A program made the translations under genes and the position numbers. 64,000 nucleotides of DNA from Chlorokybus atmophyticus (lineage: Eukaryota > Plantae > Mesostigma and Chlorokybus algae). Below the pieces are notes generated by a model. It searched no databases. It was given only the letters and a program-made list of their open reading frames with translations, and was not told the DNA's origin. Shown here in pieces: positions 30,301 through 56,197 of the stretch (positions within the stretch are counted from its first letter, which is position 1; the number at the start of each line of letters is the position of its first letter). The stretch spans positions 111,644-175,643 of the forward strand of contig RHPI01002264.1 of the NCBI GenBank assembly GCA_009103225.1, read 5' to 3'.

Positions 30301-32029
30301 GCCAGCAAACTAACTCTAAGTGGCCTGTCTTGTGACAGTAGTCGCCAGACCAAAGTTGAGTACTCTTCGGTGCACTTCTTTTGGTAGTGCCCATGCTGTC
30401 CACATCGATGACACAGCACAAGGGCAGGCAAAGCAGTATTCGCTGATCGTTTCCCTTCGTCACGTGCTGGTGGAGCGTCCCGGCCACGTTCGCAGCGAGG
30501 AGGCTCGACAGTCGTGCTAGCTACATGCCGTGAGGCGCTGCGGTTGGTGTACAGCACTGCCTTCTCATACACCAAGCGCTTATGGATGGCTTGTGCAGTG
30601 TCGAAAGCTTCCTTGAGCGTGTAGCCAAGGGGCCTGCTGTAGTTCAGGGGTCAGGCGCGTCGACTTGCTCAGGGTGGCATCCAACTCATTGACATATACC
30701 GCTGCAGCCGCCTCGTCACTGACGATCTTGTAGTTAATGTTCCTCAACAGCCCTTCCAGTCTGGAGTACAGGCGTAGAGGGTCCTCATTGGGCTTGCGTC
30801 AAAACCGCCTCAACTTCTCCACTTTGCTCGTGGTCTGCGGTGGGAAGGTGCGACGAAGTGCAGCGTATAGATCCTTGAGTGGAGATTCAAAAATGGCAGC
30901 ACCTACAGTGATGGCTGGCGCGCGCAGTGCAATTGACCCGAGGGCGAAAGCATTGCCTCCCGCACGAGAGCCAGGTGTTGCCAAAGGTAGGGGTGTGCCC
31001 ACCTCAACTGCTGCTGTTCGTTGCTCCTCAAGGATAACAGCAGAACGGTCCAGGATCCAGGCCCGTTGTGCGGCCGTCTTGATCTCAATCTCTGCAGGGG
31101 TCAGGTTGGCGATCACCAACTCAGGTTCCTCCTCCTCTGCTCTGTCAATGGCTGCCGCTATGGACAACCCGGTGACTGCAGCGGGAGTGGCAGGTGGAAA
31201 GACGGCTGCTGGACTGTGCAGTGACGCAGATGCTATAATACTGGCGAGCTCGCCATAGCCATCAACTCGATGCAGTTAAGCAACAGACTTCCACACATTT
31301 TGTGCTACATGATCCAGATACTGAGCGGCAATGTGAAAAGAGATCTCGTCTGACCAATCTTCGTTTTTCAGAGCCTGCTGTCGCATCTTGGAGTGGAACT
31401 TGATGATGAATTCGTCCAGCGAGGTAGTGCCAGCACGTCCGCAGAAGCGCAGGGACGTGGTTCAGCTGAAAGACTCCATCTCGTAGTCGTCACTGTCGGA
31501 CGAGAGTGGGGAAGCTCGATGCCGAGCAGTGGACAGGAACGGAGTGAAGTCGGAGACAAAACGCGAGCCTCTGCTGAAATGATCATTGCTCCCGTCGCTA
31601 GTCCGCTCGTAGGTGAGATTGAAGGTTGGGCTTCAGCTGCTGAGGTCACCCTCGTCTAGCGGAGAGAACGGAGTGGGTTTGCTCATACAGCTAGTCCAAA
31701 GGTGAAAGTGTATGCAGGGTAGAGTGTTTGTGCTCTACCGCCTGTCTCGATGCCGCTACCACTCACCACACTAGTGCTTGTGTGCGCTATGTGATAACAT
31801 AGATAACAAATGCACAGGGATGTGTCCCCAGATACAGACTGCACTATCTGATGCAGAATGCAACGCACTCACTTGAGCAAAGAGGGTGACACCGTGAGTC
31901 AACAAGCCCATACCATAGGTAGTGCTGTTTACGCAGTTCTTTGCACGAGCGGAAAATATGTTACACTGTTAAGTGAGGTGAATGAGCAAGCAACATGCAC
32001 CGGTAATTCTGGACCCCCCAAATTTCTGG

Positions 32030-32690
32030 AAATTCAGCGCATTTGCCCTGAATACTCATGTGTTTTATGTGTGAACTCGCCACTTGCGTGGCTGCAGAGG
32101 TCGCTGTTACGGTTGCTGATTATTCAGGCCAAATGCCCTGAATACAAGCAATGGATATTCACACGTTTTGGGCATGAATAATAATTGTAATTGTCCATCT
32201 CGCACACAACCTCCTACATGTGAGTAGTTATTCACTCGCAACAGAACTGCATATTCAGTCTTCTTAGGTATACATGGTCCTAGACTTGTACCATGGCACC
32301 AAGTGATTATTCATACTTTGTGTGCGTGAATATTTACAGCGCCTGCTCTCACACTAGGTCCTCCTTATTAGTAATTATTCACACGCATATTGGCTTAATG
32401 TTCACACATACTAAAGCTGTTTCAACAGCACATGTACCATACTAGCAAGTGATTATTCATATGATATGTGATTGAATAATACAGCATATTTGCTCTCACA
32501 CATAGTCCTATATATGAGTGGTTATTCACCCATAGTATGGTTGAACAATCACTGCTGCCTTTGGTCGATTTTTCACGAGAATGATAATTGAATCATACAG
32601 CACTTCTGCTCACACACATAGTCCTACATATAAGTGGTTATTCGCTCACAGTTTGGTTGAATAATCACTGCATCTTGCTATCGTCAACAG
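32030..32690. repeat. Left subterminal array of TGAATA/TATTCA motifs in both orientations
   Basis: More than 15 copies by eye, e.g. ttattcac, tgaatattt, gatattcac, tgaataatcac. Confidence 0.8.
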
Positions 32691-32819
32691 CTGTGACATA
32701 GCATAGCTGTGACATAGCACATAGCAATCAGTCCAGCCGGTGAATCTGAACAGCAATGTCAGCTGAATGGCAGCTGACTCGAACAACAAATTCACTGATG
32801 TCTACAATGTATCTCTGCT

Positions 32820-35328
32820 ACCTACTTCTTGCTGCCTCGACCACGCCCACCGCGCCCACCGCGCCCACCCCGGCTGCCCTTCCCACGGCCCCTCCCGCGC
32901 TGTGTGGTTGTGCCTTCTTTTGCTGGCTCCCTCACCTTGATACTCTTCAGCAACCCAACAGGCCAAAGTAGCAACAAACCCGGCTCGCACTCTGCGCATA
33001 CATCAACCACACATGAACTCAGCTGACTTGCACAATGTTGAAACTGTTCGTGCAATCGCATGCACACAAACGCGTTCACCTTTCAAGTGGGTCACTTGCA
33101 CTCCAACCCCATCACGCTTGAAGCTGATTGGCAGAGGCACAACCTCTTCTTCCCCTGGTCCGGGACGTCTGGTCCTAGTGATGGGAAGACTGCGGCTGAA
33201 CTGGACCACCATGTTGCCCTCTCCAATCTTCTTGCCATGAAACTTGTTGACAGGATTGATGTCGCTTACGTGCGCCTCCCCTACTGGTTCTTTGCGCCCG
33301 TTAATGAACAGTTGGACTTCACTGCCAACCTTCATCGTCGGTGCGGTGTCGTCCTTGTCGCTCAGCTCTTCCTGCGCATGCAAGTGACAAACACATCAAG
33401 AGGTACACACATACACAGATGTGATCTCTCATACAGCGCTTGCGAAGCGACCTGCCTTCTGCGAGTCGTTGTCGCTGTTGTTGGGGCTGTCCCCCTCGCT
33501 GTCCGGGGCGCTGTCCTTGGCGCCATCTTCACCGCTGTTCTCGCTTCTATCTGTCTCAGGCATTTCTGAATACGTTGGCTCATCCTGCGCGACAAGGTGA
33601 CACGACGTGTTAACAAGCTTACAACCGTCACGCAACGAATGCGTGCCTGCCGCAGGTGACAGTTTGTGTGCAGCCAGAAGAACGCAAGAAGCCCATAAGA
33701 TCAAGTACATGGTGCTTTCATACCTCCTTTTGCTTGCCGCTCTTCTTCTCCAACACCGTCTCCTGCTTGCCAGTCGAGTGGCCTGCCTCCTGAGACTTGT
33801 AGGGAGCCGGTATCGAGCGAACAGTTTTGTTTGTTTTCTTTTTGGGGGGGCTTGACACCTCATCCTCCTGCCAACAGCATGAAGTCAGATGGTGAGCCAC
33901 AACTCAGTGCATTGCCGCTCTATCAAGTCCAATGCTGCGTACCTCACCAGACACTTTGCGCTTCCCTGAGCTGCTGTCACGCACATCAGCACCCTGCTTG
34001 GCACGTGCCTGAACACAACAGTCATGAACGATCATGAACACATGTTTAGCAAAGTACAAGCAGGAGCGGCATCTGACCTGTGAACCAGTAGCAAGAGAAC
34101 TTCAGGGTTGTGGTGCAGTGCCTTCCTTGTTACCTATCGCATACACAAGGCACCGATCACAAAAACCTGCATATACACACAGTACTTCAGCAGCTGCCTG
34201 CGCGCGCAAGACGCGGCTCACGCTGCGAGGTGCCATTTTTGTCGTCGCTGGCGTCGCTGGCGGGATGTGAACGCGTGGGCGCCGTGCAATTACAAGGGGT
34301 CATCATACACACCACACAACCTGCATACATAAGGCACCATCAAATACAAAGCATCGTTCTCAACACGACATTGACAAAGCCAACTTTGTGCAAACTGTAG
34401 GTCACCCTCTGAGGTGGCATCCTCGTCGTCGCTGGCAGATTGCACTTCTTTTGACTTCTTGGGCTTCTTCTTGTTGGCTTTCTATCAAGCACATGGCAAA
34501 GGCACTCAAGACATGCACATCGCACGAACACCTTAGTCACTACATGACACACACCTTGTTGTTCTTGTCGCTAGGCCCTCCCCTGCGCCTTGGCACAAAG
34601 CCCCCCGCGAAAGCCTTCTCCATCATCTCCTTGTAACGATTCCGACTCTTTTCTTTCTGCTTCTCTTTGTGCTTGGGGTTGCTGTATCCCTTTTTGTTGC
34701 CCAGATACTGTTGAATCTTCAAACGCGCCTACCCACCAATAAAGAAGTTATGAACGCCAACACATGCAAAGCAAAGTCCTCCCAGCTCAAACAATGCTGC
34801 CATATTGCATGACAGCTCATGTAACTGTGGGAATTTGCCAACCATTTGATAGGAGAGCTCTGGATTCAGCAGATGCCAGCATTTGGTTGCAAGAGCGAAC
34901 TTGAATGGGTCCTGCTTCGTTTGAGTCTTCCCCGGCATCATGCGACAGTACTCGTAGCAAATCCGGCCTTTGTCGGCCAGCTTGGTGACCTTGCGACGAT
35001 CACGGGCATGATGCTTCCCACGCCAATGTAGGACCTTCAGTGCCTGCATGATTTACATTGGTGCACTAGTACAACATGGGACAAAACAGACTTCGGCAGC
35101 AAGGTCTGACATTGATTGCGGATGCTTGATGCATAAGCTCACTTTTAAGGAGACCATTGCTGTGGTCTCAAGATCACGCAGGTGAACAGTCGCCTCACTG
35201 GTTTCCCACTCATGCTGCAGCTGCTCATCAGAAGGACCACCAGCATTCTTCCCCCATATCTCTTCGTCCAAATTCTCCCATCCTTCGCTGCAGTTGCTGG
35301 ACCGCCCACCCGACGTGGTGCCTGACAT
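32820..35328 (-). CDS. Multi-exon TnpA-like (En/Spm Tnp1-type) accessory gene, possibly disrupted
   Basis: C-terminal VGEAHVSDINPVNKFHGKKIGEGNMVVQFSRSLP...LLLLWP resembles the VAxGxVxxxDPxxxVHGxxLG...LP...WP domain of CACTA TnpA proteins; upstream GT-AG exons; RGG-rich tail. Confidence 0.6.
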
Positions 35329-35521
35329 GATGATGCCCTCCTGTAGATAGATCAAGCTTGCTTTACAAGTCAGTTGCAACCGCAACCCTAATCAACCTCA
35401 AGTCTTGGTTGACTCAAGTGACTGCAGGTTGTAAGCCATGTGGACTTGCTTGTTGACTTGTCACAGCAAGCAAACCATGTACCTTGCAAAAGAAGTGTCT
35501 CTAAGCTGCTTGCACAAAGGC

Positions 35522-35957
35522 GTGCTTGTGAACTTGTCAAACAGGCACACTGCAAGCCAAACACCCAGTACCTTGTAGAGTAGAAGCTGCTTTAGCTTGT
35601 TGCCAGCTGAACACGACAAAGGTAAGCCTAACAGCAAGCTAGCAGGCAAATGGCATGTGCATGCACAAACATGTGCTTGTGAACTTGTCAAACAGGCACA
35701 CTGCAAGCCAAACACCCAGTACCTTGTAGAGTAGAAGCTGCTTCAGCTTCTTGCCAGCTGAACACGACAAAGGTAAGCCTAACAGCAAGCTAGCAGGCAA
35801 ATGGCATGTGCATGCACAAACACGTGCTTGTGAACTTGTCAAACAGGCACACTGCAAGCCAAACACCCAGTACCTTGTAGAGTAGAAGCTGCTTCAGCTT
35901 CTTGCCAGCTGAACACGACAAAGGTAAGCCTAACAGCAAGCTAGCAGGCAAATGGCA
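35522..35957 (+). repeat. Tandem repeat, 151-bp unit, about 2.9 copies
   Basis: gtgcttgtgaacttgtcaaacagg starts at 35522, 35673 and 35824; near-identical units. Confidence 0.95.
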
Positions 35958-37390: not shown

Positions 37391-39180
37391 CCATTGGTCT
37401 ACACACACTTTGTTTGCCCTTTACACTCTGGTTACCGCTGAGCTGCTCTGCTGGTAATTCTCCAAGTGTGGCTGTTGCTTGTGCAATTACTGATAACAGT
37501 GGGGTGTGTGCCTTTGTGCACCTTGGAGATCTAGCAGCAGATCAGCTCATGCACAACCGCCACAATTGTGTTCACAACAACATAGTGACTAGCAGACTAG
37601 TTACATAACAACTATACTACACAACAACTACCAAACTACCACCAAACTATACAACTACACAACAACAACAACTACACAACAACTATACAACTACCAAACT
37701 ACCACAAAATTATAGGCCTTGTGCAAGGATGACGCAAAGATCTGACCTTGTACTTTGTATTACCTCATGGCCGTAGCACAGCCTGCAAGGCAAAGCGGGT
37801 TGCGCTCAAAACTGCTGGACACAAATCAGGCATGCAAGCGCCTAACACTGGCAGTAGAATTGCCCAAACATGCTGTTGGAAAAACCCCTCACAACTGCAC
37901 TCACATATGCACAAATACAAGGTATGTTTGCGCAGCAGAAGAAGTGAACACGGACTTTTGCGACACACGCGCGCGTACACACACATGAGGGCTTACAATC
38001 AACTGCCCCAACTGACTGGACACCATACACACATGCACATTCATGTGATACGCATGCAAGAATGCATTTATCTGTCCCTGTCGTCGCTGGAGCTCTTGCC
38101 AACTTCTTGGGCACCGTGACTGGCGGTGTCCTGCAAACATGCTGCAGGCAATGCTCAACCTGTTGATAGCAGCTGTAAGAATGCCAAGACACCCAAAACA
38201 CAGAGCCAAATACTCTGACCTGAGTCTCATCCACAAACNACCATGCCTGGCATGCGAGCCCAGTGAATCACCAACACATGCAAATAACGGAAACCACAAG
38301 GCAGGACACTGAGGGCTTACATGCCGCCCCAGTGAATGACCAGCACACATACACACACGCACGCGCACAATTAAAACATGCATGCAGGCTTGCACGTATC
38401 TGCCTAAGTAGCTCTGCATCAACCAGGATGGCTGCCGCCGTCGCCGCCAACCTCAAGCACCTCGCCGCCGACCACGCCGCCCACAACCATTATAACTAAA
38501 GACGCTGCCGCGGCCGACCAAGACAACCTCGCCGCAGACCACAACAACCTCCCCGCCACCAACCTTGCAAACTACAACAACTTACAAGCACATTGGGGTT
38601 AGGGTTAGGGATGCCGGCTATGGCGTCAAAGGTGACTGATGGACCATCACTGATGGCACTGACATCATGTCAGTCCTGCACACTCCAGGTACAGTCTAAC
38701 CATCACGCCAATTCTGACANCGATAGCAGCTGTAAGAATGCCAAGACACCCAAAACACAGAGCCAATACTATGATTTGAGTCTCATCCACAAACACACCA
38801 TGCCTGGCATGCGAGCTCTGGTTTACCTGCTGTCTTGGAAGCAGCCGGCTGGATCATCATACCNTTTAGGGTTTTGGTGTAGCGATCGAGCAGACAACAG
38901 GCAACTGGCAAGGCTGGGCGGCAAGGGCGGCATTGTTGGCGAGGTCGGCGGCGGCGTTGGCTTCATTGCTGAAGTGCAAGTGTTGTGTTTTTGCTCGGTT
39001 GTTGTAGTTACTTCATTGAGTCCGAGAACCCTGGCGAGGTGGTTTCTTGCAGCTTCGGGTGGGCTTGCTGGAGGGTTTTGGCACTGCTTCCAACAAGGTG
39101 CAGCACATGCCGTGCTTGTCTTTGTTTGCATGCATGCCCGTTTGATCATTTCGCTAACTATCAAAAGTGCATGTTGTCAC

Positions 39181-39560
39181 TCTTGTTAGCCACCACTTGA
39201 TGCTAACCAGAGGGGCGGCCTCGTGCGTAAGACCACCTCTTGCTTAGTTTTTAAGCTGTTTTATTTGAGCATGCACTCTTGTTAGCAACCACTTGATGCT
39301 AACCAGAGGGGCGGCCTCGTGCGTAAGACCACCTCTTGCTCGGTTTTTAAGCTGTTTTATTTGAGCATGCACTCTTGTTAGCCACCACTTGATGCTAACC
39401 AGAGGGGCGGCCTCGTGCGTAAGACCACCTCTTGCTCAGTTTTCAAGCTGTTTTATTTGAGCATGCACTCTTGTTAGCCACCACTTGATGCTAACCAGAG
39501 GGGCGGCCTCGTGCGTAAGACCACCTCTTGCTCAGTTTCCAAGCTGTTTTATAGTTTTCA
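39181..39560 (+). repeat. Tandem repeat, 96-bp unit, 4 copies
   Basis: tcttgttagc(c/a)accacttgatgctaaccagaggggcggcc starts at 39181, 39277, 39373 and 39469. Confidence 0.95.
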
Positions 39561-39698: not shown

Positions 39699-42600
39699 AT
39701 GTCCAAGCGAAAGCTCGTTCCCCTTGGCCAGTTTAAGCCTGCAGGTAATAAGTAATGCATGCTTGTTCAGCATGATTATTGTTAACATGTGGTAACACTA
39801 GTCATGCACACAGACAAGAAGCACAAGGGTCCAGCGCACAAGAAGGAACCTGCTAAGAAGGAAGCTGTCCTGCAGAAACCCTGCAAGAAATCAAGTAATG
39901 TAGCGCTGTTCCAGCTGACCATACTAACGCATGCTCACTGCGGTTGTTTGCCACCATTGTTGCAATAACACTGTCTATTGCAGACCTTTTTGACACCACA
40001 AAGGCTCAGTTGCTGGAGGGGTTCAATAATTGGCGGAAACTAAGGGAGGAGGAGAAGGCTGGGAAGGCGAAGATGTCCACAGAATACAGTTGGGATGTCG
40101 TGGTTGAAATAATGCAGAAGAACCTGAATGAAGATCCTCGCTTGCTTGAGCTCGACAAGAACTTGCAGATCTGCCTACGGAAGTTCGTGGAGCACCAGCT
40201 CAGGCTTTGTGATCCGGAGGCAGCTGCTGGGGGTATGGACCTCGGGCATTTTGGCCTTGAAGATGTTGTTACCGATAATGACATCCATGAAGAAACGAAG
40301 ACAAAGTGGGGAAAGAAATTCTCTGACTGGAGGAAAGCGAAGGCGAAGAGCAAGAACCTCATGTCATGGGGTGAGCTGGTGGTCTTTATCAAGAAAGCGC
40401 TGCGCGAACCAGACTTGGCTTCCCTCGATCGAGAATGGAGGCTCAAGCTACGGCAGTATGTGGAGGAAGAGCTAAGGCTATGTGATCCAGAGGCAGCTGC
40501 TATGGGCATCGACATCGGGGAATACGATCTTGACTACAAAACAGAGGCGCCCAAGCAGCAAGTGGAGGCCCAAGCCAAGCAGCAAGCCGACGCGGAGGCC
40601 AAGCAGCAAGCGGAGGATCAAGCCAAGCAGCAAGTGGAGGCCCAAGCCAAGCAGCAAGCTGACGCGGAGGCCAAGCAGCAAGCGGATGCTGAGGCCAAGC
40701 AGCAAGCCGACGCGGAGGCCCAGCAGAAAGCTGAGGCCCCACGCAAGTCCCAGACTGCACAAATGCAGGAAGGGCCTCGACCTGAAGCCGGTACCTCTGC
40801 TTCTGCTGTTGAACCAGAAGACGGTCTACCTCCAGCAGAAACGGAGGGCGAGTTAGAGTTGGTTGGGCTGTTGCATGATAAACACCGGCTTCGGCTTTTC
40901 GATGCCTATGCAGTTGGGAATTGCTTCTATGCCTGCCTTGCCCAGTCGTGCCCTCGCGTGAACGCTGCGTGCTTGACACGCGCGAACGCAGCGGACAACG
41001 GGTCTTTCTGGCGAAGCATTGTGCTGGACAATGGCAAACAGCTGCCAACAAGAGAGCAAGCGCAAAAGCTTCGGAAGATCTGTGCTGAGCAGGTCAACCT
41101 TTATTGGTTGCTGGAGTATCGCAACTACGGGGCCTGTGGTGACATGGGCCAGGATTACAAAAAGATGGCCAGGAAATATGGCGTAACCAGGGCACTTAAC
41201 AAAAAGCAACTCAAGACTAAGCAAGATGAAGACAACGCTGTAGAGGCTCTGCAGAAAGTGATCGCTGAAGAGAGCGTTTATGCCGATCAACTGCAAGTGG
41301 CGATCATGGCGCACGCTCTTGGCATTCACATCGGTACTGTGTAGCTCACTGAGGTTGCCGACGAGAAGCAGAACTGCTGGAAAGCAGAGCACAAGGGCGG
41401 CCTCATCGAAGGCGATGACGGGAGGTACTACACAGTGGATGCCAAGGGAGAGAAGCATTCCGTCAAACCTGTAGTGGTGATTGGCGAGGATGTTATCGAT
41501 GTGGCTGGCCATATAATCATTGGCAACACGGATCCAAGCAAGCCCAGCGCGCATTACATGTCTGTTGGTGATGCAAATGGTATACTCTCTTGGCAGCGCA
41601 GCGACATGCCACCAGAAGTCCTGCGCTGCATGTACCCTGCAGATGCCGAGCCCCAGCCCCAGCCCCAGCAGCAAGCCCAGCCCCAGCCCGAGCCGCAGCC
41701 CCAGCCCCAGCCCAAGCAGCAAGCCGAGCCCCAGCCCAAGCAGCAAGCTGATGCCGAGGCCAAGCAGGCCAAGCAGGAGGCCAAGCAGCAGGTCAAGCTG
41801 CGGCAGGAGGCGGAGGCCAAGGCCAAGCTGGATGAGGACAATGCCAAGCAGCGGCAAGAGGAGGCCGAGGCCAAGCAGAGGCAGGAGGCGGAGGCCAAGG
41901 CCAAGCAGGATGAGGCCAATGCCAAGGCCAAGCAGAGGCTGGAGGCCGAGGCCAAGCAGCAGCAGGAGGAGGCCAAGGCCAAGCAGGATGAGGCCAATGC
42001 TAAGGCCAAGCAGGAGGAGGCCGAGGCCAAGCAGAGGCAGGAGGCGGAGGCTAAGGCCAACGAGGCTAAAGACCAGCAAAGGCAGGAGGCTGAGGCCAGG
42101 AGCCAGCAGGAGGCTGGCGCTATGCAGGTTGATGCCGCTGTTGAGGAGGAGGCTGATGCTATCAGTGATATGTCAATTGACATCAGCACCGCAGCAACCA
42201 GTGACACCAGTGACACTAAGAAACGCAGACGCCGCCCGTCACGCCGCCAACAGCGAGCTGCTTTGCAAAGGGACAACACGCCTTCCGGTGCTTTTCGGAA
42301 GCTGCATCGTGTGCAACAGGGGGAGCGCACCGTGGACGAATATCACGCGCAGTTTGCACAATTGTGCGGGGTGGCAAACACCTGCGTTGAGCTGGTGCCT
42401 AAGGCCCTTAAGCTACAACTGTTTCTCCAGGGACTCAGGAAAGTAGTGCGCATTGGCGTGCCCAAGGGTCCTTGCAACCAAGATTGGAATGCTGATCAGT
42501 TCGATTTGCTTGTGTCGGCTGCCAAGACTTGTGAACGGACCTTGCTTGTTAAACAGCAAGCACACCTCGTAGATCGTTCAAAGTTCGAGTTAGGCAAAGC

Positions 42601-42883
42601 AAGGCCAAGCAGGTTGCAGAAATTGGAACGACTGGAACAAATCAGCAGTCGTCGGGAGGGCAAGAAGCTGGCACATCAAGCTGCATATCAGCGTGAGCAG
42701 GAGATGATAGCTGCACAGGAGACCCTTGAGCAGCAGGAGCAGCTGCGTAAGCAGCTGAAGCGGCAGAAGGAGGAGGAGCGCCAATAGATAAAGCGAATGG
42801 CTCAGCAGGGAAAGGAGCAGCGGAAGCAGCGGCGGGAGCAGAAGGAAACACAGCCGCAGCAGCAGCTGCAGCAGCAGAGGTAG
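39699..42883 (+). pseudogene. Cargo gene: duplicated helical repeat, OTU-like cysteine protease, Ala/Glu/Gln/Lys repeats and a retrotransposon-gag-like segment; in-frame TAG at 41342-41344 and 42785-42787
   Basis: MSKRKLVPLGQFKPAG plus two introns, then one long frame; DAYAVGNCFYACLAQ (Cys at 40922), YADQLQVAIMAHALGIHI and AHYMSV (His at 41552) match the OTU motif order; LHRVQQGERTVDEYHAQFAQL...LFLQGLRKVVRIGV matches the gag QGxxxVxEY...F..GL signature. Confidence 0.75.
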
Positions 42884-44408: not shown

Positions 44409-45176
44409 TCAGTAAAAAGGAGGGTAATCAACAGTGAAGCCTATTGCTTCCAGCAACAGCCTGCCTACATGTTCAGAGCAAGTTGGTGGAATGGCATTCT
44501 TGACTTCCGATTCCGCATCCATCCACTCCACCTGCATGGCAGACTGCCACCCTGCAATCGTGCCACGGCAGGATGCTTGGCCGTACACCGGGTGAATTTG
44601 CCTCTCCCCAGGTAGCAACTGTCGGCGCTGCTCCGGGTGGGTGGCCAGCTCTCCAAGTGCACAACCAGTGTGGTTGCATTTCAAGTCTGAGTGCAGTGGA
44701 GGGTTTGTCTCGAAGATGCGATGACGATACACATCCAACTTGAACATGGTGCCACACAGCTTCAGGTGAGTTGTCATGTGTCCTGATGCGCCTGCGACAT
44801 TCTCTATCACCCATGGCTTGCCGCTCAGCTGCAACTTGGCTCTTATGGGGTCAATTAGGTTGACGTGCTCGCGTCGATTGCCGTACGCGGAGCGCTGTGT
44901 AGTGGGAATGGCCCCACTTAGAGCTTGACATGGAGGACTTGCCCACACCGCAGCGTATGCTGTCGGGTCAGCGTCCATTGCATCCATCTGGCAGAACTTG
45001 AATGGGTATGACGGTTGTGGCTTGTTGTCGATGCCCTCAACATCAAACCCTGCCCTGTACAAACCCATGGCTACACCACCAGCGCCGCAAAAGAGATCCA
45101 GTGCGCGCGGCCTGCAACGCCTTCCGTTTAAGTCTATTGGTGTGCGTGTGATCAGAAGGGTGGGGGCTTGGGCCAT
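44409..45176 (-). CDS. Compact prokaryote/phage-type C5 cytosine DNA methyltransferase domain (255-aa intronless ORF)
   Basis: Motif I ALDLFCGAGG; II/III GIDNKPQPSYPF; IV WASPPCQ (catalytic Cys); VI PWVIENV; LCGTMF; VIII YRHRIFE; C-terminal AMQVEWM...NAIPP. Confidence 0.93.
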   Translation of the reverse strand: MAQAPTLLITRTPIDLNGRRCRPRALDLFCGAGGVAMGLYRAGFDVEGIDNKPQPSYPFKFCQMDAMDADPTAYAAVWASPPCQALSGAIPTTQRSAYGNRREHVNLIDPIRAKLQLSGKPWVIENVAGASGHMTTHLKLCGTMFKLDVYRHRIFETNPPLHSDLKCNHTGCALGELATHPEQRRQLLPGERQIHPVYGQASCRGTIAGWQSAMQVEWMDAESEVKNAIPPTCSEHVGRLLLEAIGFTVDYPPFY

Positions 45177-46156
45177 CGATCAAGCTCTCGACCAGGCAAG
45201 TCTTGCAGTTTCAGACAGCTTTGACCACCAACACGAACCATTACGTCGTAACCCTCACGCACAGCTGCCATGTTCCAGTTCTTTATCAAGATGTGGTGCA
45301 GCCGTGGGTCCTCAACGAAATCGTCGTACTTGATGGTATGTTTTCCTGAGCCACATGTTTGCCTGAGCCGGTGCTTGCATGAGCGTGCGCATGTAAATAC
45401 TCTGCAGTATACCTGTGTTGGCATCAAAAGTGATGATGTGGCCTGCATACCAGGAGCTCATTCCTGGCCAGTACACCACAACGCGGCATGCTACCAAAGA
45501 CTGCCCCTCATCAACAATCTCCTTCCGCCAAGCAGCCAGTGTCGCGACATCGTCGACAACCGCGTTCCCCTTTGGCATTCAAGAGTAAGTTGGTCATGCA
45601 TGCAAGCGCTGTTTTGCTGTTTGCAAGGACAGTTCAACTCGACAACCGCCAAGCAGCCAGTGTCGCGACATCGTCGACAACCGCGTTCCCCTTTGGCATT
45701 CAAGAGTAAGTTGGTCATGCATGCAAGCGCTGTTTTGCTGTTTGCAAGGACAGTTCAACTCACCCTGTTGTTGACATCGTCTTCAATTACCGTGGACTTG
45801 CCGCGACCGTTGCGCACGAGCTGACGTCGAACCACATTGCACATCTGCCCATCGTGATATGCTCCAGGCCGTGCCCAAGGCAGGTGATTCATGGGCTCGC
45901 CGTCCCACTCAAACTTGGAAAGCGAGCACTGCAGGCAAGTGCACTCCTCCCAAAAGAAATCTGGCCTCATGCATTGTGCCAGCAGTCTGCATTGCCTCAC
46001 ATTGTCCCCCCTTGCCTTGTGGTGCCAGCAGGCTTCATAGAAGCCATACTGCTCACTGTACAGCTTGCACTTCTCTTCATGCTGTTGCAGACGTCTGTTG
46101 TTGCCATTCCTAACCAAGTATGCTTTGCAGAAGCTACACACTTTGACGCCGCGCAT
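45152..46156 (-). CDS. Spliced 5' part of the methyltransferase locus: Zn-finger/Cys-rich exon plus Tudor-like domain
   Basis: Exons 46156-45764, 45569-45413 and 45345 onward join in frame through GT-AG introns; CSFCKAYLVRNGNNRRLQQHEEKC (C-x2-C...H-x3-C); LVACRVVVYWPGMSSWYAGHIITFDANTG|KHTIKYDD (PDS5/PTM-like Tudor). The frame overlaps the MTase ORF start and needs one extra base (e.g. in the C5 run near 45165) to read through. Confidence 0.7.
45525..45761. repeat. Tandem duplication, 121-bp unit, of an intron end plus exon start
   Basis: ccgccaagcagccagtgtcgcgac...cagttcaactc at 45525 and 45646. Confidence 0.95.
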
Positions 46157-46321
46157 GCTGGCGCCACGCTACCTGGCACACAAACCCTAGAAGCTAATGC
46201 ACTGGACGGAAGAAGAAAAGGAGCATGTACGCAAATTGTGGAGCATATCCGGATTGACTTTCTGGCTTGTTTTGAATCGGGATTGGATGTGTCCTAAACC
46301 CTTAATTTACGGTAGGCAGTC

Positions 46322-49300
46322 ATGACGGTGGCGACGGCGGCGGTGTCAGCGGCGGCAGCGTGCCTGCAGGTCTTTGCTTTCGCTGTATGGAAGTTGATTG
46401 GCAGTTGCTTGCAGTATGTTGGCTGACTGCTTTTGATGTTTGTAGCATGAGCTACTTTCGCAGGTGTTTTTGCCGCGACTGCAAAGGGAGCAAAGTGTTC
46501 ACACACAACCACATTAGAAGGGCTGAATATCATGAAAACTTTGGCAAAAACATGTGGTGTGGCACTCCAGAAGCTGTTGCTCCTGAATACCGTGATCGAC
46601 TACAACCCCATGAACTTGAAGAAGCTGATGCTGCTGTTGCTGCTGCATCCTTACACATGTCGTCAGGTACGAGAGCAACTTCTCTACAGCTGTGAATCTA
46701 TACAACAGGCTGTCTGATCATTGATCTGGCTTGCCCCAGGTGAAGCTCTCCATGACACCGAACAATTGCTAGTTGGGAACGACGCTATTGAACATGTTGA
46801 CACAGGCACGCCGTTGCAACCGAGTGTTGAATCTCCTTTCAATGTTGCAGCCAACTTGCAACCAGCAGGTACGACCTGACTTGCGTGGCATGTTGACATT
46901 GCGGATGCTGTGCCTCTCATTGTTCATGTGCCACTAGACTCATTGCAGCTGGCAGGTTGTAATCCGTGTGCTCATGAAGGACAATGTGCTTCTGGAGAAC
47001 AACGCGAATCTCACCCAGCATTTTGTGGAATTGAGAATGCTACATTGCAAGAGCATCAAGGTGCCAGAACCAAATCCACAAATGGACAAGTAGAGCCTGA
47101 GACGCCAGTGCACTGCACCTCCACTGCTGAGCAAGTCGATGCGGAGCAAGGTGATGCGGAGCAAGGTGATGTTGCCGGCGAAGACCAAGACTATGAAACC
47201 GATGTGGAATCGCAGCCGAACGAGGCTAAATGCGTTGATGATGCCATGCTACTTGACAAGGTGAATGCTGCGTTGCTGGATAATGCAAGCAACCCTGTTG
47301 TTTTCGGCTCTCGTACAACCCCTCTAGGCATTTCCATGCTGCTATTGGTTCTGGCGCAGCTACATCGAATACCCTTCAATTTCATGAATAAACTGCTCAG
47401 GTTGGTGGGTAAATTACACTGCTGACTGCTCAGCCTGTTCAGAACTGATGTGTTTTTGTGTGCCAGGTTGTTACGTGGCATCCTCTTGCCTAAGGAGAAT
47501 AAGATGCCAGGCAGCATGCACGAGCTATTGAAATGCCTTGAAGGCCTCAACATGGGCTTCCACACATATGATGCCTGTCGCTGTGATCACATGTTGTATT
47601 GTGGCCGACATGCCAACAGGATACTTTGCAAAGGTGAGCAATTGTTGCAAATGTTCACTACAATGGGATTTGATTAGCATGTCCCATCAGCATACGACTT
47701 GCTTATGCAGTCTGCAAGGCCCCTCGCTACCGCAACATAAGAGGTAGACAAGTTGCATGGAAAATTGGGCGTTACTTTGACGTGCCTGCTGCGCTGAGGG
47801 CTCTGTACCTAAAACCTAGTGTTGCTGCGGAGATGATGGCGCACACAAATCGAAGTCAGGATGGGATTATGCGATCTATACACGGTAACATTACCAAGTT
47901 CAGTGGTAAATGAGGCACGACTGTGTGCATGATTGTGTTGGTGAGCGGCTGGGGCAATCCAATGCAAGCCCTCCGTGTCCGTGCCTTGTGCTTTTGTGTG
48001 CGTGGCGCTGAGGCGGCATGTAAGACCTCGGTGTCCTTGCCTGTGTTTGTTTGTGTGTCGGCGTGGCGCTGAGGCGGCATGTAAGACCTCGGTGTCCTTG
48101 CCTGTGTTTGTTTGTGTGTCGGCGAGGTGCTGGGGCGGTATGTAAGACCTCAGTATCCAGCCTTGCGATTGTATGCATGTTTGAATGTGTTGTGGGGCTG
48201 GGGCAGTTGGTCGTAAGCCCTTGGTGTACTTGCTGCTGTCAGACTCGCCAATGTTCAAGGACACTAAACAACGCTACAGCCGGTTTGCCAAAGAACCACG
48301 CAATGTGCGCCTAGCGATGTTCATCAACGGGATGAGCCCGTTCAAAGATCCGCACAAAGATATAAAAGAGCATTTTTCTTCCTGTATGCTCGTTGCAGTG
48401 TAAATGTACGAATGGCAGCAAAGGGTTTGTTGAGTTGCAGGGAACTATGAGTTTTGGGTTGTCACAATCTCAGTGTTGAACCTGCCCATTGCCAAGATGC
48501 ACAAGACAGACACTACATTTCTAGCTGCTGTAATCCCTGGACCCAAACAACCAGAGAATCTACAGGCTTATCTCAAGCCAATTATTGACCAGTTGGGAGA
48601 TCTCTGGGAAGGTATGGTTTCAACGCAGCTAGGATAAGCAGCTTCCATTACTGCAGTCATGCCTGACTAATGCGCATGACTGAGGCATATAATCTGCTGG
48701 CATTTGTTGTAGGTATAGACGTATATGACAGCCACCGCGACGCAGTTTTTCGTTGCAGATCTATTCTGGAGATTGTAATCCATGATTACCCAGGTACTCA
48801 AGCAGCAGCAGTGTTTGCACTTACTGTTATCAGTGTCTGACTGTATCTGTATATTGGACTGTCCTTACAACCATGGTTGTGGCTACTGAAGTACAACATG
48901 TTGGTTGCGCAGCTCTGGCAAAAGCTGCCTTGCAGATGGCGCATGGAGCCATCTTTGGCTGTTAAAAGTGCGAGTGCAGTGGAGAACATGTGGAACTTTT
49001 TAAAAAGGTGATCTATCAAGGCCACCGCCGATACCTACCGGATGACCATCCTTACAGAGTTGATGAGCGTTGGCCGCAACCAGAACACAGACCTCCACCA
49101 CCCATGCGGACTGCAGAGAGCGTGTACAGGTGAGCAATCTCAGTTGATTGCGCATTCGGTTGCAGAACATAGGTATGTCAGCAATGGATGCCATGTGATC
49201 AGGTATGCTATGACATCTCGCAACAGCAAGCGTCCACTGCACTCCAAGAGACATCCTTCAAAGACCTCCGGCATCCTTGGACTGAGCTGTTTTCACGACC

Positions 49301-51460
49301 TTCCATATTGGCTACCGTTACAAAAATCTGTCAAAGGTCATGTGGTTGGCCCTATGCACATTTTTGCCAACCTGGCAACCAACTTTGCAAATCTCCTAGC
49401 TGGCTTGCGCGACAGCATCGAATCACGAGAAGATCTGCAGCAGCAAGGCCGCATGCCTGAACTCTGGCTAGAGGTACGTATGTAGTCGGCCTCGTTGACA
49501 TGTGCCATAGTTGGATTTAACCAAGGACTTGAACCTATGTGCTGCAGACAGATGAAGATGAAGGATGGAAAGGAAGTCGCAGTCAAGGTAAAACCCCAGG
49601 CTCCATGGACAATCACAGATGTAGGACTGGTTGAGCAATTGCTCTCCGGCGTGAGGGTTTCAAGCACTTTCGGCTCGAAACTGCGGTCTTTCACAAAGCA
49701 TTTAGGTGAGATAGCCGTTATATGTTTTGTGTTTACGCTAAAGCAATCATTCTCCATGCATGGACAACTTTTGACATGGAGCATGCAGGCTCGATGAAAT
49801 CGCACGACAAGCACAACTTATGGTCGGTTGTTTTTCAGTACGTGCTGCGCTCTGCACACGACATTGGAGAAGGTTAGAAGAGAACCATCTTCAAACTATG
49901 CGACATCTATCAGCGGCTGACTGCATTGGAAGTAAAGCAGTCACACCTTGAAGAATTGAAGGTTGGCTTTAATAACACTTTACTCTGCATGTCCAGCTCC
50001 TATGGCATGCGTAGCTTATTACTTAGTGCAGGTGCTGGTGCATGAGGCACAGTCTGAAGTGGAGCTGTTCTTCCCGCGAACTTCTCTCACAATGATGCTG
50101 CACCTCCTTGGCCATCTACCAGAGCAGTGCATGTGGCTTGGTCCGACGCGTGACCACTGGGAGTGGGCACATGAACGCTTTATGCAGTGGGTGAAGCGCA
50201 TGATATTTGCAAGGCAGCATGTGGAAGCAAGCATCTGCAAAAGGCAAGTTTTGTGTGAGCCCACTGAGAGTTACGTGCAAACTTTCCACATTGTTTGCCT
50301 TGTTCAAGTGCCAGTTGCATCTGCAGATACTCTATCCAGCTCATGCTGAACACTTACATGGACACCTTGAAGCGACTTTTCTCCGACATCAGTTTGCGAT
50401 CGGGCAAGCAACGAGATGATGACGACTATGTGCTCTGCGGACGGAGACACCGTATTGAGGTTGGGGATAAAGATAGTAAGACAAGGCAGGAGCTCGAGTG
50501 GTGGTTGGCTGAGAATGACAATGAATACAGGCTGTTAAAAGAGTAAGTTGCTTTGGGAGTTGCTGTTTTGTACGTGATGTCCAACGCACAGACAGTATGA
50601 TTTATTTATGGGTTGCTGCTACACAGAGAGTTCAGTCGGGAGGTGAAACAAACGCAGGATGGCAAGGGAAAGGGCTCAAAAACAAGGACATGTCGTGGCA
50701 AAGGACATGGAGCATATGACTGAGCTGCATCACTGGCGTGGACCTGCTAGGGAGCTTACAAAGCACGAGATGGAGCTGTTGAGCGGTCCAATCTTTCCAA
50801 AGTACATCAAGCGATACTTCAGAGCACGCTACAAGGACATCGGTCAGTTCAGAGCAGAGGAAATGGAGAAGAAACTCCGCACCATGGACTGTGGCGTGTT
50901 TACCGTTGGGCGTGACTCAGATGACCCAACCAAGAAGATCCATTGGTATGGCAGGGTGCAATCTTTTGATGTTGTGGTGATAGCTGGTCGGGAGCACCAG
51001 CTGCTCAGAGCTAGGTGGTAAGACAAGCCCCGCTTTGCAGAACAAACCTACCTTGATTGCAACCTGGTAAGTGGCTGTGTTGCAATCGTTTTGGCGTGTG
51101 CTTGGTGTGATGATAGTAAATTGAAATAGTAGTATGAAAATGGCTGATGAATATCCCTTCTTGCTGGCAGGTCAAGGGCCAGTGGTTTGAGGGAATTGAT
51201 CCCCATGACAACAAAGTAACAGTAGCGCTTGTTAAAGACAGGCGCAGTCTCATGCGTCGAGGCATGCACCGGGACACTCCGGTAAGAGGAGAGTTAACAA
51301 CGTTGTCCATTAGAATCTGGATGTCCTCATATATCCTGGGTTTTGGCATCACATACAACCATCTTGTGTACTTGGTGCAGGGTGCCCAAAGCGAAACCAA
51401 TAGCGCCTCGAGCGAGGTGTCATGGACCACACGCCGCGACTGGCATTTTGAGTACAAGAG
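46322..51460 (+). pseudogene. CACTA TnpD transposase (transposase-associated Zn domain, Tnp2/Transposase_21, DUF4218, DUF4216-like); multi-exon and inactivated
   Basis: CFCRDCKGSK...HIRRAEYHENFG; YDACRCDHMLY; EPRNVRLAMFINGMSPF; VLNLP...VIPGPKQPENLQAYLKPIIDQLGDLWEG; HDYPG; YQGHRRYLPDDHPYR; PMH; MKSHDKH; MMLHLLGHLPEQCMWLGP...WAHERFMQWVK; RTMDCGV...WYGRV; TAA at 48964-48966 and a frameshift near 50670. Confidence 0.92.
47975..48155 (+). repeat. About 60-bp tandem repeat (3 copies) in a transposase intron
   Basis: gctgaggcggcatgtaagacctcggtgtccttgcctgtgtttgtttgtgtgtcggc repeated. Confidence 0.85.
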
Positions 51461-51536
51461 GTACTGTTTGCGATTGTGATGCCTCATATCCCTACTGTGA
51501 GACTGTAGACCTGGACACTGAACCTTTGTTCACAGG

Positions 51537-53418
51537 ATGAGACCGAGACTGGAGCTGGATGCGTTGGAACATTGGGAAAACAACATGAAGACTACTGCTT
51601 TGTCTGCAAGGATGGGGGCACCATATCTGGTTGCGATGTGGAAGGTTGCTGGAAAAGCTACCACGCGCACTGTGTCTCTATGCCACCTGTGGAGGATGAA
51701 TATTGGGAGTGCCCAAGGCATGAGTAAGTGGACTTCATTGCAGCAAATGCTTGGCATCTTGTTGTGAGGAACTTCACTCCTAGAACCATCATCAATTGTA
51801 CTGAACCAAAACACAGGTGCCATGTGAAGAACTGCAACGAAGCAGCTTTTCAAGTCTGCGCAACGTGTCCAAACAGCCTCTGTCGACGGCACGCTGTGGG
51901 TAGCATGGTTGAGGTTACGTGCTCGCGATGCGCTGCGTACGAAGAAGGTGGTGCTCCAGCGCAGCTCCCAAGGGAGAGCCTTGCTCGTCGTTCTCTGCCG
52001 GGCAGTTGCGGTAGGGTTTCACAACCTGTGCAGAGTGGGGTTCAACACGTTGAAGAGAGTGGGGATGAGGCTAACAATGGTAAGCTGCTGTGTGCTTGAG
52101 CTTGTTGATTTGCGTTGTGGTTCTTGCCCAATTGAACCATTTATGGCTGCAGAGGCAGTCACGATGGAAGTTGACGATGAAGACGAAGAGGGCTGTAATC
52201 AGCAACCCACGACGGCTGCGGCAGTTGTGGACCTCGTGGGCAGCGATGATGATATCATGGTGCTGGACGATCCAGTCAGCAACCCGCAGCCGTCAACACC
52301 GCAGCCACTGTTCATTTACCCTAGTGCAAGTGCACGTGATGCGGTGCCAGTGCTTGAAACGGACAGGAGGTTGCTGGATGGCAGACAAGAGCTCAATGAC
52401 ACCATCCTCCACTTCTTTTGCAGGTATGTGATTTGTTGCGTCTGTGTTATTCGTGTATCTCATATGTACGTGGGATGCACATGCAGATACAAGGAAGAGG
52501 AAATCTTAGGCAGAGCAGATGGCATTCAGGTGAAGCTGTTCCACCCGCATTTCTACACCAAGATCGTGCGCTGCCATATACAAAATGTTTGGCACACGAG
52601 CAATCACAGGATAGACAGGTGGGAGAGTGATCCGTTTGCCAAGGACTTGCTGGGAGTGATTGTCAACCCAGACACGCGGTGAGAATAAGCGCCAAGAATA
52701 TCTTGCTGAATTGCTGCTGTATTTGCAAACTGGAATTATTTTGATTGTGTACACAGGACTCACTGGAGTCTGCTGCTTGTGTGCAATCCTGGAGGCCAAC
52801 GTGGAAGTGACACGCCGCCTTTACTCGTTCATCTCGACTCCCTTGGCCTGCATCGCAACGTTGATGGACCTACGCGCGCTTACCTTGACTACATGTGGGG
52901 CAGAAAGCATGGAAGTGACTCACAACAACGCTTCTCTCCCGAAAACGTACAGCTTCTTGTACCACAGGTAGCACACGTTGCATTGCACTAGTGATGAGTT
53001 TGCATGCATTCTGTCACAAGCACTGATTGGATGCATGCACATGCATTTGGTTTGCAAGCATTGACACATGTTTGTGCAGGTCCCTCAGCAGAAGGATGGA
53101 GTTGCGTGCGGGTTGTTTGTCATGCTTTATCTTGACAAGTTTATAGATGGGGTACAAGCTGGTCCAATTGACCCAAACGCACGGATATTTCAACAGGTAC
53201 AGTTCATGCATGTGCACTGCAATGTTTACAAGTGGAAGGTGCTTCAATGGCACTGTCGCGTAGGCCGACACGTGCTTAGTAACCACATGTTATTGCTGTG
53301 TGGTTGTGTGCAGATGCAAAGGAGTTGGTTTCATCTCCAAGTGGCAGACAGGTTGAGAAGACGATTGCGAACATTCATGGACAGTATGTTAGCACAGCAA
53401 AGACATGAGTTGAGCTAG
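51537..53418 (+). CDS. PHD finger, C5HCH-like Cys-rich module and Ulp1/SENP (peptidase C48) SUMO protease; 7 exons; possibly spliced to the transposase transcript
   Basis: HEDYCFVCKDGGTISGCDVEGCWKSYHAHC...WECPRH; CHVKNCNEAAFQVCATCPNSLCRRH; LNDTILHFF, LFHPHFYTKI, THWSLLLVCNPG (His 52761), HLDSLG, QQKDGVACG (Cys 53107); GT-AG introns. Confidence 0.85.
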
Positions 53419-53569
53419 TAGTAGCAGGTGGTGTGTAGCATAGCAATGCTGTAGTCCATATCAGAGCTGTCCCCCACCATCAACTCAAACCAGCTGTGTA
53501 GAATTGCTGAGCAACTCTGGCTTTGACATATACTAGACTGTATATCAGAATTAGCAGTGCAATCTACTT

Positions 53570-54180
53570 GGTTTTCAATCACATTCGAGACTTGGCCAGA
53601 ATGAGAGTATATGTTTATTCGTGTGGGGTTGAATATTCACTCACCGCTAGGAGTTAGTGCAAAACGTCTTGCTTGGTTTTGGAATGGTGTTGAAAATTTA
53701 CTCAAAGCTAGGACTTAGTGTGAATTGTATTGCGTAGTTTCAGATTGGTGTTGAATGTTCACTCACATCTGTGGCATGAAACTGATGAAGGTTATGAATA
53801 TACATGTGTGACAAGCTGATCAACTGATTATTCACGGGCAGTTGGGACTTGGTGAGTTTAAGCTGTCTGTTATAGCCACAAGTCTATGCCCCTTCATGAA
53901 TGTTCAGGCAATGTATAGCTGAATATTTAGCAGAGCACATGCTGTGTCCATTCACAACTGCATGCCCTTGAACATTCAATCGATTTCAACTGAATATACG
54001 AGGTATATGGGTTTTAAAAGGTGGCATTGATTTATCGTGTGGATATTCACGCGATTTGTAGGTGAATGTCGCGATTTCGTTTTGGCAGGGATTGCACAGA
54101 ATGTACGAAAACACTTGAATATTCACTCGATAAAAAGCTGAAACGGTAAATCAAACGAATATTCAGTGCGTTTGCCGTGA
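53570..54180. repeat. Right subterminal array of TGAATATTCA-like semi-palindromes
   Basis: gttgaatattcactc, gttgaatgttcactc, catgaatgttcagg, cttgaatattcactc, cgaatattcagtg. Confidence 0.8.
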
Positions 54181-54819
54181 AATCTCATAAAGTCGGGGGT
54201 CTCATAATTACCGGTGATGTGGATTCTATGCCCTGACTGATGCCATCAGACACACTGCAACCAGGCACATTAAGCTCACAGCGATGACAAGCACGATGCA
54301 CACACGAGCATGCACAGGCTCTCACACCGTGAGGCGGTTCTTGGTAACCGGGATGGCGTGTTCGCAATTCAAGTCGTTTCAGAAGCTCTTAGCTTTCTCA
54401 CTCGCAGTGTCACCAGCTGATCCGGTGAACCCTGTGACTACTTATACAAGTCAAGTCTTGATTGTTAAGAACATAAGCTAATGGTCATACTGAGGCTATT
54501 TCCACAGCGATTGTCACTCGATATAGAACACAACTTATAACTGAACTCACAGCTGAACAGCTACGCGCCGTGCCCATGTAGGCTATGGTCGTGAGCTACT
54601 ATAAAGTCATGGCCTAGCTACTGGTCCGTGACGCGCGCGCGCTGGTATGCTGGTAGGTCGGGCGATGGTTTTGATGTAGCCATGCTCGATGAAGGCTGGT
54701 ATGCGTGGGCAAATAGGCATGACAGATGACTGCCGCATCAACGGTCCCCGACACAGTCGGTAAAAGCTGAGTTCTGGAGCAGAAGGCTACCCCAAAACTT
54801 CAAGGGGGGTGGCTCGTTG

Positions 54820-56165: not shown

Positions 56166-56197
56166 GGNNNNNNNNNNNNNNNNNNNNNNNNNNNNNN
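56113..56197. repeat. (GA)n microsatellite followed by an N gap (56168-56197)
   Basis: Direct reading. Confidence 0.95.

Follow-up and report, generated by a model that had tools for sequence, protein, structure and literature searches.

A 64,000-nucleotide (64-kb) stretch of DNA from the alga Chlorokybus atmophyticus (contig RHPI01002264.1, positions 111,644 to 175,643), referred to here as the window, contains what we take, with a probability of about 0.7, to be one copy of a large multi-gene EnSpm/CACTA transposon of the CMC clade that carries genes for a viral-type DNA methyltransferase (DNMT) and for a PHD5-C5HCH-Ulp1 protein, and that is itself non-autonomous. Transposons are commonly regarded as objects of DNA methylation; more and more of them are found to carry writers, readers or erasers of chromatin marks as well.

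Positions 31998-54216 of the window are one EnSpm/CACTA insertion of 22,219 bp, which is precisely bounded. The sequence CACCGGTAATT begins at 31998 and its reverse complement ends at 54216, giving CAC...GTG termini with terminal inverted repeats (TIRs). The repeat is perfect over 11 bp, an 11-mer found at these two sites only within the 64 kb, and imperfect similarity between the two ends reaches 70 nt at 71% in an inverted-repeat comparison of the window. Immediately outside both ends lie the copies of a 3-bp target site duplication (TSD), ATG. Both subterminal regions (800 bp each, 1.6 kb together) are dense in TTATTCA- and TGAATAT-type motifs in either orientation, with TTATTCA itself occurring seven times there and not once in the other 62 kb. 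Among the published criteria for EnSpm elements are CAC...GTG ends together with a 3-bp TSD (PMC12730594). From left to right, the boundary features are:

31995..31997, no strand: left TSD copy (ATG), its junction supported by a paralogous empty site
31998..32067, plus strand: 5' TIR, CACCGGTAATT, perfect over 11 bp and about 71% complementary to the other end over 70 nt
32068..32700, no strand: 5' subterminal array of ~146-bp units with ATTATTCA / TGAATAAT motifs in both orientations
53600..54146, no strand: 3' subterminal array of 61-bp units with TGAATATTCA motifs
54147..54216, minus strand: 3' TIR, ending ...AATTACCGGTG
54217..54219, no strand: right TSD copy (ATG)
55435..55692, minus strand: unoccupied inverted paralogue of the insertion site, found by self-comparison

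The last of these, 1.2 kb downstream of the element, is diverged but still about 80% identical to the joined flanks (31897-31997 and 54220-54391). When the reverse complement of 55430-55700 is aligned to the left flank, one TSD copy and the right flank, the alignment is colinear, with a single 3-bp slot at the junction and no indel. Because the unoccupied paralogue joins the flanks colinearly, the 22,219 bp represent one insertion with a 3-bp TSD, and the element proposed in an initial annotation made from the sequence alone (a single 22-kb CACTA element with CACCG termini, an ATG TSD and subterminal arrays) is borne out by its TIRs, TSD, motif counts and empty site. That annotation had named as its own refutation the possibility that the two termini belong to different elements. 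Such a composite, or one in which host genes became trapped between unrelated ends, would fit TIRs that are perfect over 11 bp only and the long non-coding spacers and tandem arrays found inside, but we regard it as barely credible, given that the empty site holds exactly one copy of the 3-bp sequence, that the two TSDs are identical and that the two ends share subterminal motifs absent from the rest of the window. Insertion would have been by a DDE cut-and-paste reaction into another repeat, producing the 3-bp TSD; by analogy with En/Spm, the transposase would act on the CAC...GTG TIRs and an accessory protein would bind the subterminal TTATTCA-type repeats.

The target of the insertion is part of a local repeat. 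In addition to the inverted copy at 55435-55692, a direct copy (55679-55918) lies just downstream and matches 54809-55041 at 87%, the local repeat taking in 55435-55918 and 54222-55041.

The predicted transposase gene has a Cys-rich N-terminus and a DUF4216-like C-terminus. It is broken up by many short GT-AG introns and has no long open reading frame (ORF); profile searches were run on separate stop-free contiguous pieces. The gene and two lesions in it are as follows:

46447..51479, plus strand: TnpD-type DDE transposase gene of many short exons, with Transposase_21 at 48185-49130 and DUF4218 at 49960-50346
48326..48328, plus strand: AAC (Asn) at the position taken as the first catalytic Asp ('MFINGMSPF' against 'ISLDGYQIF' in the relative L008)
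48963..48965, plus strand: in-frame TAA within the C(2)C motif ('GC*KC' against 'GCRFC' in L008)

The N-terminal exons splice cleanly from the ATG at 46447. Further downstream, four consecutive plus-strand pieces (48185-48400, 48434-48634, 48667-48837 and 48966-49130) match Transposase_21 in profile order, covering positions 8-44, 48-109, 103-137 and 151-207 (a span of 8-207 of 213), the best of them with E=1.5e-10 and 41.1 bits against a cut-off of 28.6. The DUF4218 match has E=1.2e-9 and 38.5 bits. Four colinear Transposase_21 exons and DUF4218 confirm the TnpD gene of the initial annotation, and because these matches are found together with CAC...GTG ends and a 3-bp TSD, membership of the element in EnSpm/CACTA (CMC clade) can, on sequence criteria, be considered secure.

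The sole retrievable relative of this transposase is a distant metagenome locus, L008 (4.2 kb, 40% identical, without cargo). Set against L008, the window transposase keeps the H(3)H motif ('HLLGH', 'HYLLH' in L008) and the final E ('WAHERF', 'YPMERL' in L008), whilst C(2)C is present but interrupted by the stop codon. The exon with C(2)C reads ...HGAIFGC-TAA-KCECSGEH..., and its TAA is not removable by any GT-AG intron. Of the DDE triad, the window transposase retains the second D (HDYP) and the E (HERF); the first D, which we take to be the family's residue at 48326-48328, is replaced by N and the triad is thus not intact. The nonsense codon and the loss of the first catalytic Asp make it most likely that this copy is no longer autonomous as sequenced. 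'MHIEKN' was considered as the site of the catalytic E and rejected on comparison with L008 and on the H(3)H...E spacing, which place the E in 'HERF'. A variant genetic code in which TAA and TAG specify Gln was likewise rejected: there is one such codon per long gene, and Gln is abundantly encoded there by CAG and CAA.

The DNMT gene is transcribed divergently from TnpD, with the two start codons ~290 bp apart:

44409..46156, minus strand: DNMT gene of four exons (46156-45764, 45569-45413, 45345-45253 and 45166-44412, then stop) encoding a 466-aa protein
45525..45761, no strand: exact 121-bp tandem duplication, running from the 3' part of DNMT intron 1 into the beginning of exon 2

The hand-spliced model runs from the ATG at 46156 without internal stops, through introns of 194 nt (73 nt minus the recent duplication), 67 nt and 86 nt that are all canonical GT-AG. 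The copies of the duplication are 100% identical and include the first 45 nt of exon 2; intron 1 is lengthened and the ORF unbroken. This is a very recent event in an element that otherwise has older point lesions.

Exon 4, within a minus-strand ORF at 44412-45179, encodes a complete small C5 cytosine methyltransferase (C5-MTase) in one exon, with motifs I (FCGAGG), IV (PPCQ, in SPPCQ), VI (IENV), VIII (RHR, in RHRIFE) and X (IPP, in NAIPP). Its score against PF00145 (23.1 bits) is just over the cut-off of 22. In an alignment of 46 sequences, however, the window DNMT keeps 14/14 invariant and 28/28 near-invariant columns, and the AlphaFold2 (AF2) model built from the same alignment has a mean predicted local distance difference test (pLDDT) score of 92.8. 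Foldseek comparison with the PDB returns the C5-MTase fold, with M.HaeIII and DNMT3B at the top (probability 1.0, 12-15% identity); PDB chains of DNMT3 and DNMT1 resemble the window DNMT at fold level only, at 12-16% identity. The C5-MTase of the initial annotation therefore stands on profile score, conserved columns, model confidence and fold, and the putative writer of 5-methylcytosine (5mC) can be considered real and apparently intact, with predicted activity.

The N-terminal exons are less readily classified. Exon 1 had been described as a Zn-finger exon and is indeed Cys/His-rich, but matched no family in the searches made. Exons 2 and 3 are Tudor-like by eye, with a W..Y.G...YDD pattern in the spliced sequence; the Tudor assignment itself found no match in Pfam, and the best in the PDB (7de9_A) has E=0.19 over 25 residues, the domain being split by an intron so that half of it served as the query. 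We found neither an MBD (methyl-CpG-binding domain) in the window DNMT nor any of the canonical eukaryotic accessory domains (BAH/RFTS, PWWP/ADD, chromo, SNF2).

Where did this enzyme come from? An exhaustive HMMER search identified 4,091 DNMT relatives, the best with ~41-47% identity and none long or multi-domain, and a word-indexed homologue search agreed with it. Nearest to the window DNMT, at 41-50% identity, are giant-virus proteins and short enzymes (~210 aa) from phages or metagenomes. Among structures in a viral library, the C5-methylase of Pithovirus LCPAC201 is the top match (E=1e-19, 35% identity), ten orders of magnitude ahead. In a maximum-likelihood tree of 41 sequences, built without reference DNMT1/3 sequences, the window DNMT falls inside a 98/92-supported clade of virus-associated and MBD-bearing proteins that includes P0129 and P0177, with the phage DNMT group separate from it; phage and bacterial enzymes follow as the next relatives. 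A C-terminal 'VDYPP' tail is common to the window DNMT and its relatives in the clade. The genomic contexts of the relatives are:

P0004, P0005 and P0007: phage or prokaryotic mobile elements
P0129: a 245-kb contig with RNA polymerase Rpb1 and PolB
P0177: adjoins Rpb10, a kinase and a RING protein
P0171 (Chromochloris zofingiensis): an intron-less contig with an mRNA capping enzyme and UCH

The contexts of P0129 and P0177 thus indicate giant viruses. P0171 is ~53% identical to the window DNMT.

Members of this clade have features of their own. An MBD is carried by the close relatives P0001, P0003, P0123, P0125, P0128 and P0171 (loci L001-L003), where it is placed between motifs VIII and IX of proteins of 320-390 aa, combining 5mC writer and reader in one polypeptide; we found no description of a DNMT with an MBD between these motifs in the literature examined. 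One of these loci, L002 (Logan SRR24235291 contig, 10,080 bp; EukProt Chrzof1 UNPLg00428), is an unplaced contig of Chromochloris zofingiensis with intron-less genes for the DNMT-MBD protein, an mRNA capping enzyme, a split UCH deubiquitinase and a SAP-domain protein, and appears to be viral or an endogenous viral element, not part of an algal chromosome.

By its sequence affinities, the window enzyme is a predicted viral/phage-type orphan DNMT and not a captured host DNMT1/3. Its most likely history would be one in which a giant virus or an endogenised viral element was the source of the catalytic exon, which the transposon then captured; a single-exon enzyme of giant-virus/phage type would have gained intron-containing N-terminal exons (Cys/His-rich, followed along the protein by Tudor-like). 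That the chromatin genes are instead a fragment of an endogenised giant virus lying beside CACTA sequences, and not cargo at all, is very unlikely. The nearest DNMT relatives are on giant-virus or virus-like contigs, and giant viruses often encode PHD, Ulp1-like and OTU-like proteins. All of the genes, however, lie between one TIR pair whose flanks are contiguous in the empty-site paralogue, and they hold spliceosomal GT-AG introns; profile searches of the 22 kb revealed no other viral hallmark gene, and the remaining ORFs of the element have no match to viral loci.

The second cargo gene of the proposed CACTA element lies at the other side of the transposase:

51479..53418, plus strand: NSD-type PHD5-C5HCH gene ending in a predicted Ulp1/C48 protease

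A stop-free GT-AG path leads from the ATG at 51479, which overlaps the TnpD stop codon, to a TAG at 53416-53418. The exon at 51536-51723 matches PHD_NSD (E=1.5e-6, 28.9 bits against a cut-off of 23.9) and residues 12-60 of the NSD3 PHD5-C5HCH structure 4gnd (E=7e-11), and the following exon matches residues 63-92 of the same chain, with a C5HCH score of 25.3 bits (cut-off 26.3). This NSD-type PHD5-C5HCH unit is a predicted histone-tail reader. Peptidase_C48 is matched by two colinear exons (14.7 and 18.5 bits, each under the cut-off of 20.7) that cover the His and Cys regions, and the predicted catalytic residues are found in order: His in THWSLL, Asp in HLDSL, and Gln and Cys in QQKDGVACG. 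The His exon of the Ulp1 domain has no PDB match. The PHD/C5HCH part of the protease named in the initial annotation is thus upheld by the PHD_NSD and 4gnd matches, and its Ulp1 part is made probable by sub-threshold C48 matches that retain H, D, Q and C. Being directly downstream of the transposase, the gene would possibly be co-transcribed with it, and the PHD exon may alternatively be spliced in phase onto an upstream TnpD exon. In plants, CACTA and MULE elements carry Ulp1/C48 protease genes (KI-MULE / ULP-like genes), and the Ulp1 module would belong to this widespread class of CACTA/MULE-associated genes. A search for TGTAA poly(A) signals downstream of the genes of the element gave no consistent pattern.

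Two further genes of the element had been given names in the initial annotation that the searches did not sustain:

32825..35391 (approximate extent), minus strand: left-end multi-exon gene in the TnpA position
39699..42787, plus strand: long gene of ~960 codons with OTU-like motifs (unverified)
41342..41344, plus strand: in-frame TAG between the same-frame halves of the OTU-like ORF

The long ORF has a duplicated N-terminal module, a Cys...His region (GNCFY...HY) and KQQAEAEA coiled-coil repeats. The motifs 'AVGNCFYA' and 'AHYMSV', picked out by eye, are the sole support for OTU. Neither half has a Pfam match at E<=10, and no match was found in the PDB (phmmer) and no homologue in the word-indexed search. 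An AF2 model of a 167-aa OTU-like segment has a pLDDT of 50.6 and is unusable, and the assignment as an OTU deubiquitinase was not confirmed. The TAG could be removed only by an unusually short 54-nt GT-AG intron (41334-41387). At the C-terminus (42200-42784) there is a borderline match to Retrotrans_gag (PF03732, 23.8 bits against a cut-off of 24.1), which may represent a gag-like domain in a DNA-transposon gene; it has no similarity to the gag of the neighbouring Gypsy element in the window. The left-end gene encodes acidic and Ser-rich stretches and an RGG-rich tail at its end, but has no Pfam match even at E<=5, including to the TnpA-type Transposase_23/24, and 'TnpA-like' describes its position only. 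Of the writer, two erasers and readers read into the element by the initial annotation, therefore, the 5mC writer and the PHD-C5HCH-Ulp1 protein hold up, whereas the ubiquitin eraser and the Tudor domain are without search support.

Have the DNMT and Ulp1 genes travelled with the element? The initial annotation had allowed that its cargo might be separate nested insertions with TSDs of their own. No TIR/TSD pairs were found around the cargo genes in the inverted-repeat comparison of the window, and no TE (transposable element) protein domains were found by Pfam in the spacer ORFs of the element. One candidate pair of nested TIRs (38292-38358 and 48043-48109) was rejected, since its right arm is a 61-bp minisatellite in the intron between consecutive transposase exons. 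The observed/expected CpG ratio is uniform over core and cargo (0.58-0.66; neighbours 0.73-0.82). Taken together with the ~290 bp that separate the divergent DNMT and TnpD starts, these results argue for a long co-residence of cargo and core, although they do not thereby prove that the cargo is family-wide.

Even so, it is possible, if on balance doubtful, that this is a decaying CACTA copy in which the cargo is passive baggage, acquired in the manner of Pack-CACTA elements or by nested pickup, its intactness reflecting only the youth of the insertion. Nonsense codons are already present in the transposase and in the OTU-like ORF, and conservation in a second copy was not seen, none having been found in the collections searched. 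Against this, the cargo genes are complete and multi-exonic, having start codons, canonical introns and all catalytic residues, and are not exon fragments of the Pack type; the DNMT has acquired N-terminal exons and shares its divergent upstream region with TnpD; the composition of the cargo is homogeneous with that of the core; and the association of Ulp1 with CACTA and MULE elements is recurrent. Were the cargo inert, the element would still be a well-bounded example of CACTA gene capture.

A number of points weigh against our interpretation of the element as a cargo-bearing, non-autonomous CACTA copy. That the DNMT and Ulp1 genes are free of stops is statistically uninformative: with two stops in ~2,400 TnpD and OTU-like codons, ~0.9 would be expected in the ~1,030 codons of DNMT and Ulp1, and a count of zero (P ~0.4) does not speak for constraint. 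The collections searched yielded neither a second copy nor a close relative of the element; a 157-aa TnpD exon had no match in a search of 5.8 billion proteins, and pattern scans for the TIRs gave zero matches in metagenome and viral collections. All gene models were spliced by hand from genomic sequence alone, and introns of 39 and 54 nt are proposed where those elsewhere in the element are of 67-90 nt. The Tudor and OTU assignments are without statistical support. The catalytic role given to the position at which D has become N follows from what is known of the family and from one relative, and isolated N bases are present in the assembly, where single-base errors could mimic the lesions in the transposase and the OTU-like ORF.

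What might such a cargo do? The DNMT and Ulp1 proteins might tune the epigenetic state of their own family at element copies: a reader-tethered DNMT could write 5mC on element DNA, either as self-limitation or in mimicry of host marks, and a reader-tethered deSUMOylase could oppose SUMO-dependent repression. We hold each of these steps with low confidence. The fuller proposal is that of an algal CACTA family with a working chromatin-targeted module (a de novo 5mC writer derived from a giant virus, a Tudor-like guide and a SUMO protease tethered to the H3 tail) that sets its own methylation and heterochromatin state, whether for counter-silencing, self-limitation or mimicry of host marks, and that would give viral DNMTs a direct way into eukaryotic genomes and a means of spreading there. 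We put this forward tentatively and think it rather improbable. If the family is active and its enzymes work, it would offer a tractable system in which to study the benefit of self-methylation or of SUMO-mark removal, would tie giant-virus DNMTs, endogenous viral elements and transposons together in a single network of gene flow, and would help to explain the orphan viral-type DNMTs scattered in eukaryote genomes.

Comparison with known systems places the element among the EnSpm/CACTA transposons, such as maize En/Spm and Chlamydomonas Tcr3, with which it shares CAC...GTG ends, a 3-bp TSD, subterminal arrays, Transposase_21 with DUF4218, the C(2)C/H(3)H/E motifs and a multi-gene organisation of >10 kb (PMC12730594, which describes the C(2)C motif of the EnSpm transposase; PMC9940879 for Tcr3). 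It differs from them in its terminus, which is CACCG and not CACTA, in having no recognisable TnpA (Transposase_23/24), in its disabled transposase and in the extra DNMT and PHD-C5HCH-Ulp1 genes. The last of these resembles the Ulp1 genes of plant CACTA and MULE elements in encoding a predicted C48 protease with H-D-(Q)-C inside a cut-and-paste element and adjoining its transposase, but is fused to an NSD-type PHD5-C5HCH unit and is found in an alga, not a land plant.

Mobile elements with a DNMT are known from retrotransposons: SymbioLINE-Dnmt and SymbioDIRS-Dnmt3 in Symbiodinium and a Dnmt3-bearing retrotransposon in Klebsormidium (PMC5890265). These too are mobile elements with a catalytically complete C5-DNMT, which brings self-methylation or interference with the host epigenome to mind, but their enzymes are of Dnmt3 type and cluster with eukaryotic Dnmt3, whereas the window element is a DNA transposon whose small enzyme is of viral/phage type and has other accessory domains. 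A DNA transposon with a C5 cytosine methyltransferase exists in the algal-virus world in the form of Mariner-1_OLpv, which carries a transposase, a restriction endonuclease and a C5-DNMT in a prasinovirus genome (PMC3627910). The cargo of Mariner-1_OLpv is a restriction-modification pair in a viral genome; the window DNMT, in contrast, is without a nuclease partner, contains introns, is fused to chromatin-type domains and resides on a cellular chromosome.

Large multi-gene DNA transposons with a 5mC-editing enzyme, EnSpm elements and those of green algae included, are also found amongst the carriers of TET/JBP dioxygenases: in fungi these are EnSpm, Plavaka, KDZ, hAT and Helitron elements (PMC12730594), and in Chlamydomonas TET/JBP (CMD1) genes are on a large cut-and-paste transposon and a Helitron (bioRxiv 10.64898/2026.10.09.758095). 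Their enzymes oxidise or remove 5mC, whereas the window element has a 5mC writer and a reader-protease. SET domains and VANC anti-silencing factors are among the further transposon cases cited in PMC12730594. Finally, orphan viral-type DNMTs are documented in eukaryote genomes, an example being the Pithovirus-like DNMT of Acanthamoeba (PMC12344493). The window enzyme resembles these and the DNMT-MBD proteins in its clade, its 'VDYPP' tail and its probable viral or lateral-transfer origin. In those proteins, however, an MBD separates motifs VIII and IX or extra domains are absent, and the contexts are intron-less and virus-like, whilst the window enzyme is without an MBD, is extended by N-terminal exons and is encoded by a transposon. 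Searches of open-access full texts (Repbase not being covered) turned up no CACTA element or other DNA transposon of a cellular genome with a DNMT, or with this combination of genes. The novelty proposed by the initial annotation can thus be kept for the combination, but not for transposon-borne chromatin enzymes as such, which were already known.

The remaining features of the element are repeats:

35507..35957, no strand: internal tandem array, 151 bp x 3, 97% identical
39178..39552, no strand: internal tandem array, 96 bp x 3.9, 97% identical, just upstream of the OTU-like gene
47962..48158, no strand: 61-bp minisatellite in a TnpD intron, with inverted relatives at 38292-38358

Single Ns within the element at 38239, 38720 and 38864 mark local base-call uncertainty.

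Upstream, the element is flanked by retrotransposons. A complete-looking Ty3/Gypsy chromovirus (21193-27394, plus strand) has gag, reverse transcriptase/RNase H and integrase ORFs, a chromodomain-like C-terminal tail and 694-bp long terminal repeats (21193-21878 and 26701-27394) that are 95.4% identical, and a second, more degraded Gypsy-type pol (13730-18700, minus strand) has ~67% DNA identity to the first. With these neighbours, the CACTA element lies in a TE-rich island. A tandem duplication of ~610 bp, 84% identical, is present at 19068-20288, with a single N at its junction (19678). There are assembly gaps at 7679-7826 and 56168-56197, and a (CT)n microsatellite of ~830 bp with isolated N bases at 57725-58558. 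Beyond this, there is a plus-strand ORF of 367 aa (58646-59749) whose predicted product combines proline-rich YTP(A/P)P repeats with a hydrophobic segment and may be similar to hydroxyproline-rich glycoproteins of the cell wall, as would suit a green-algal host.

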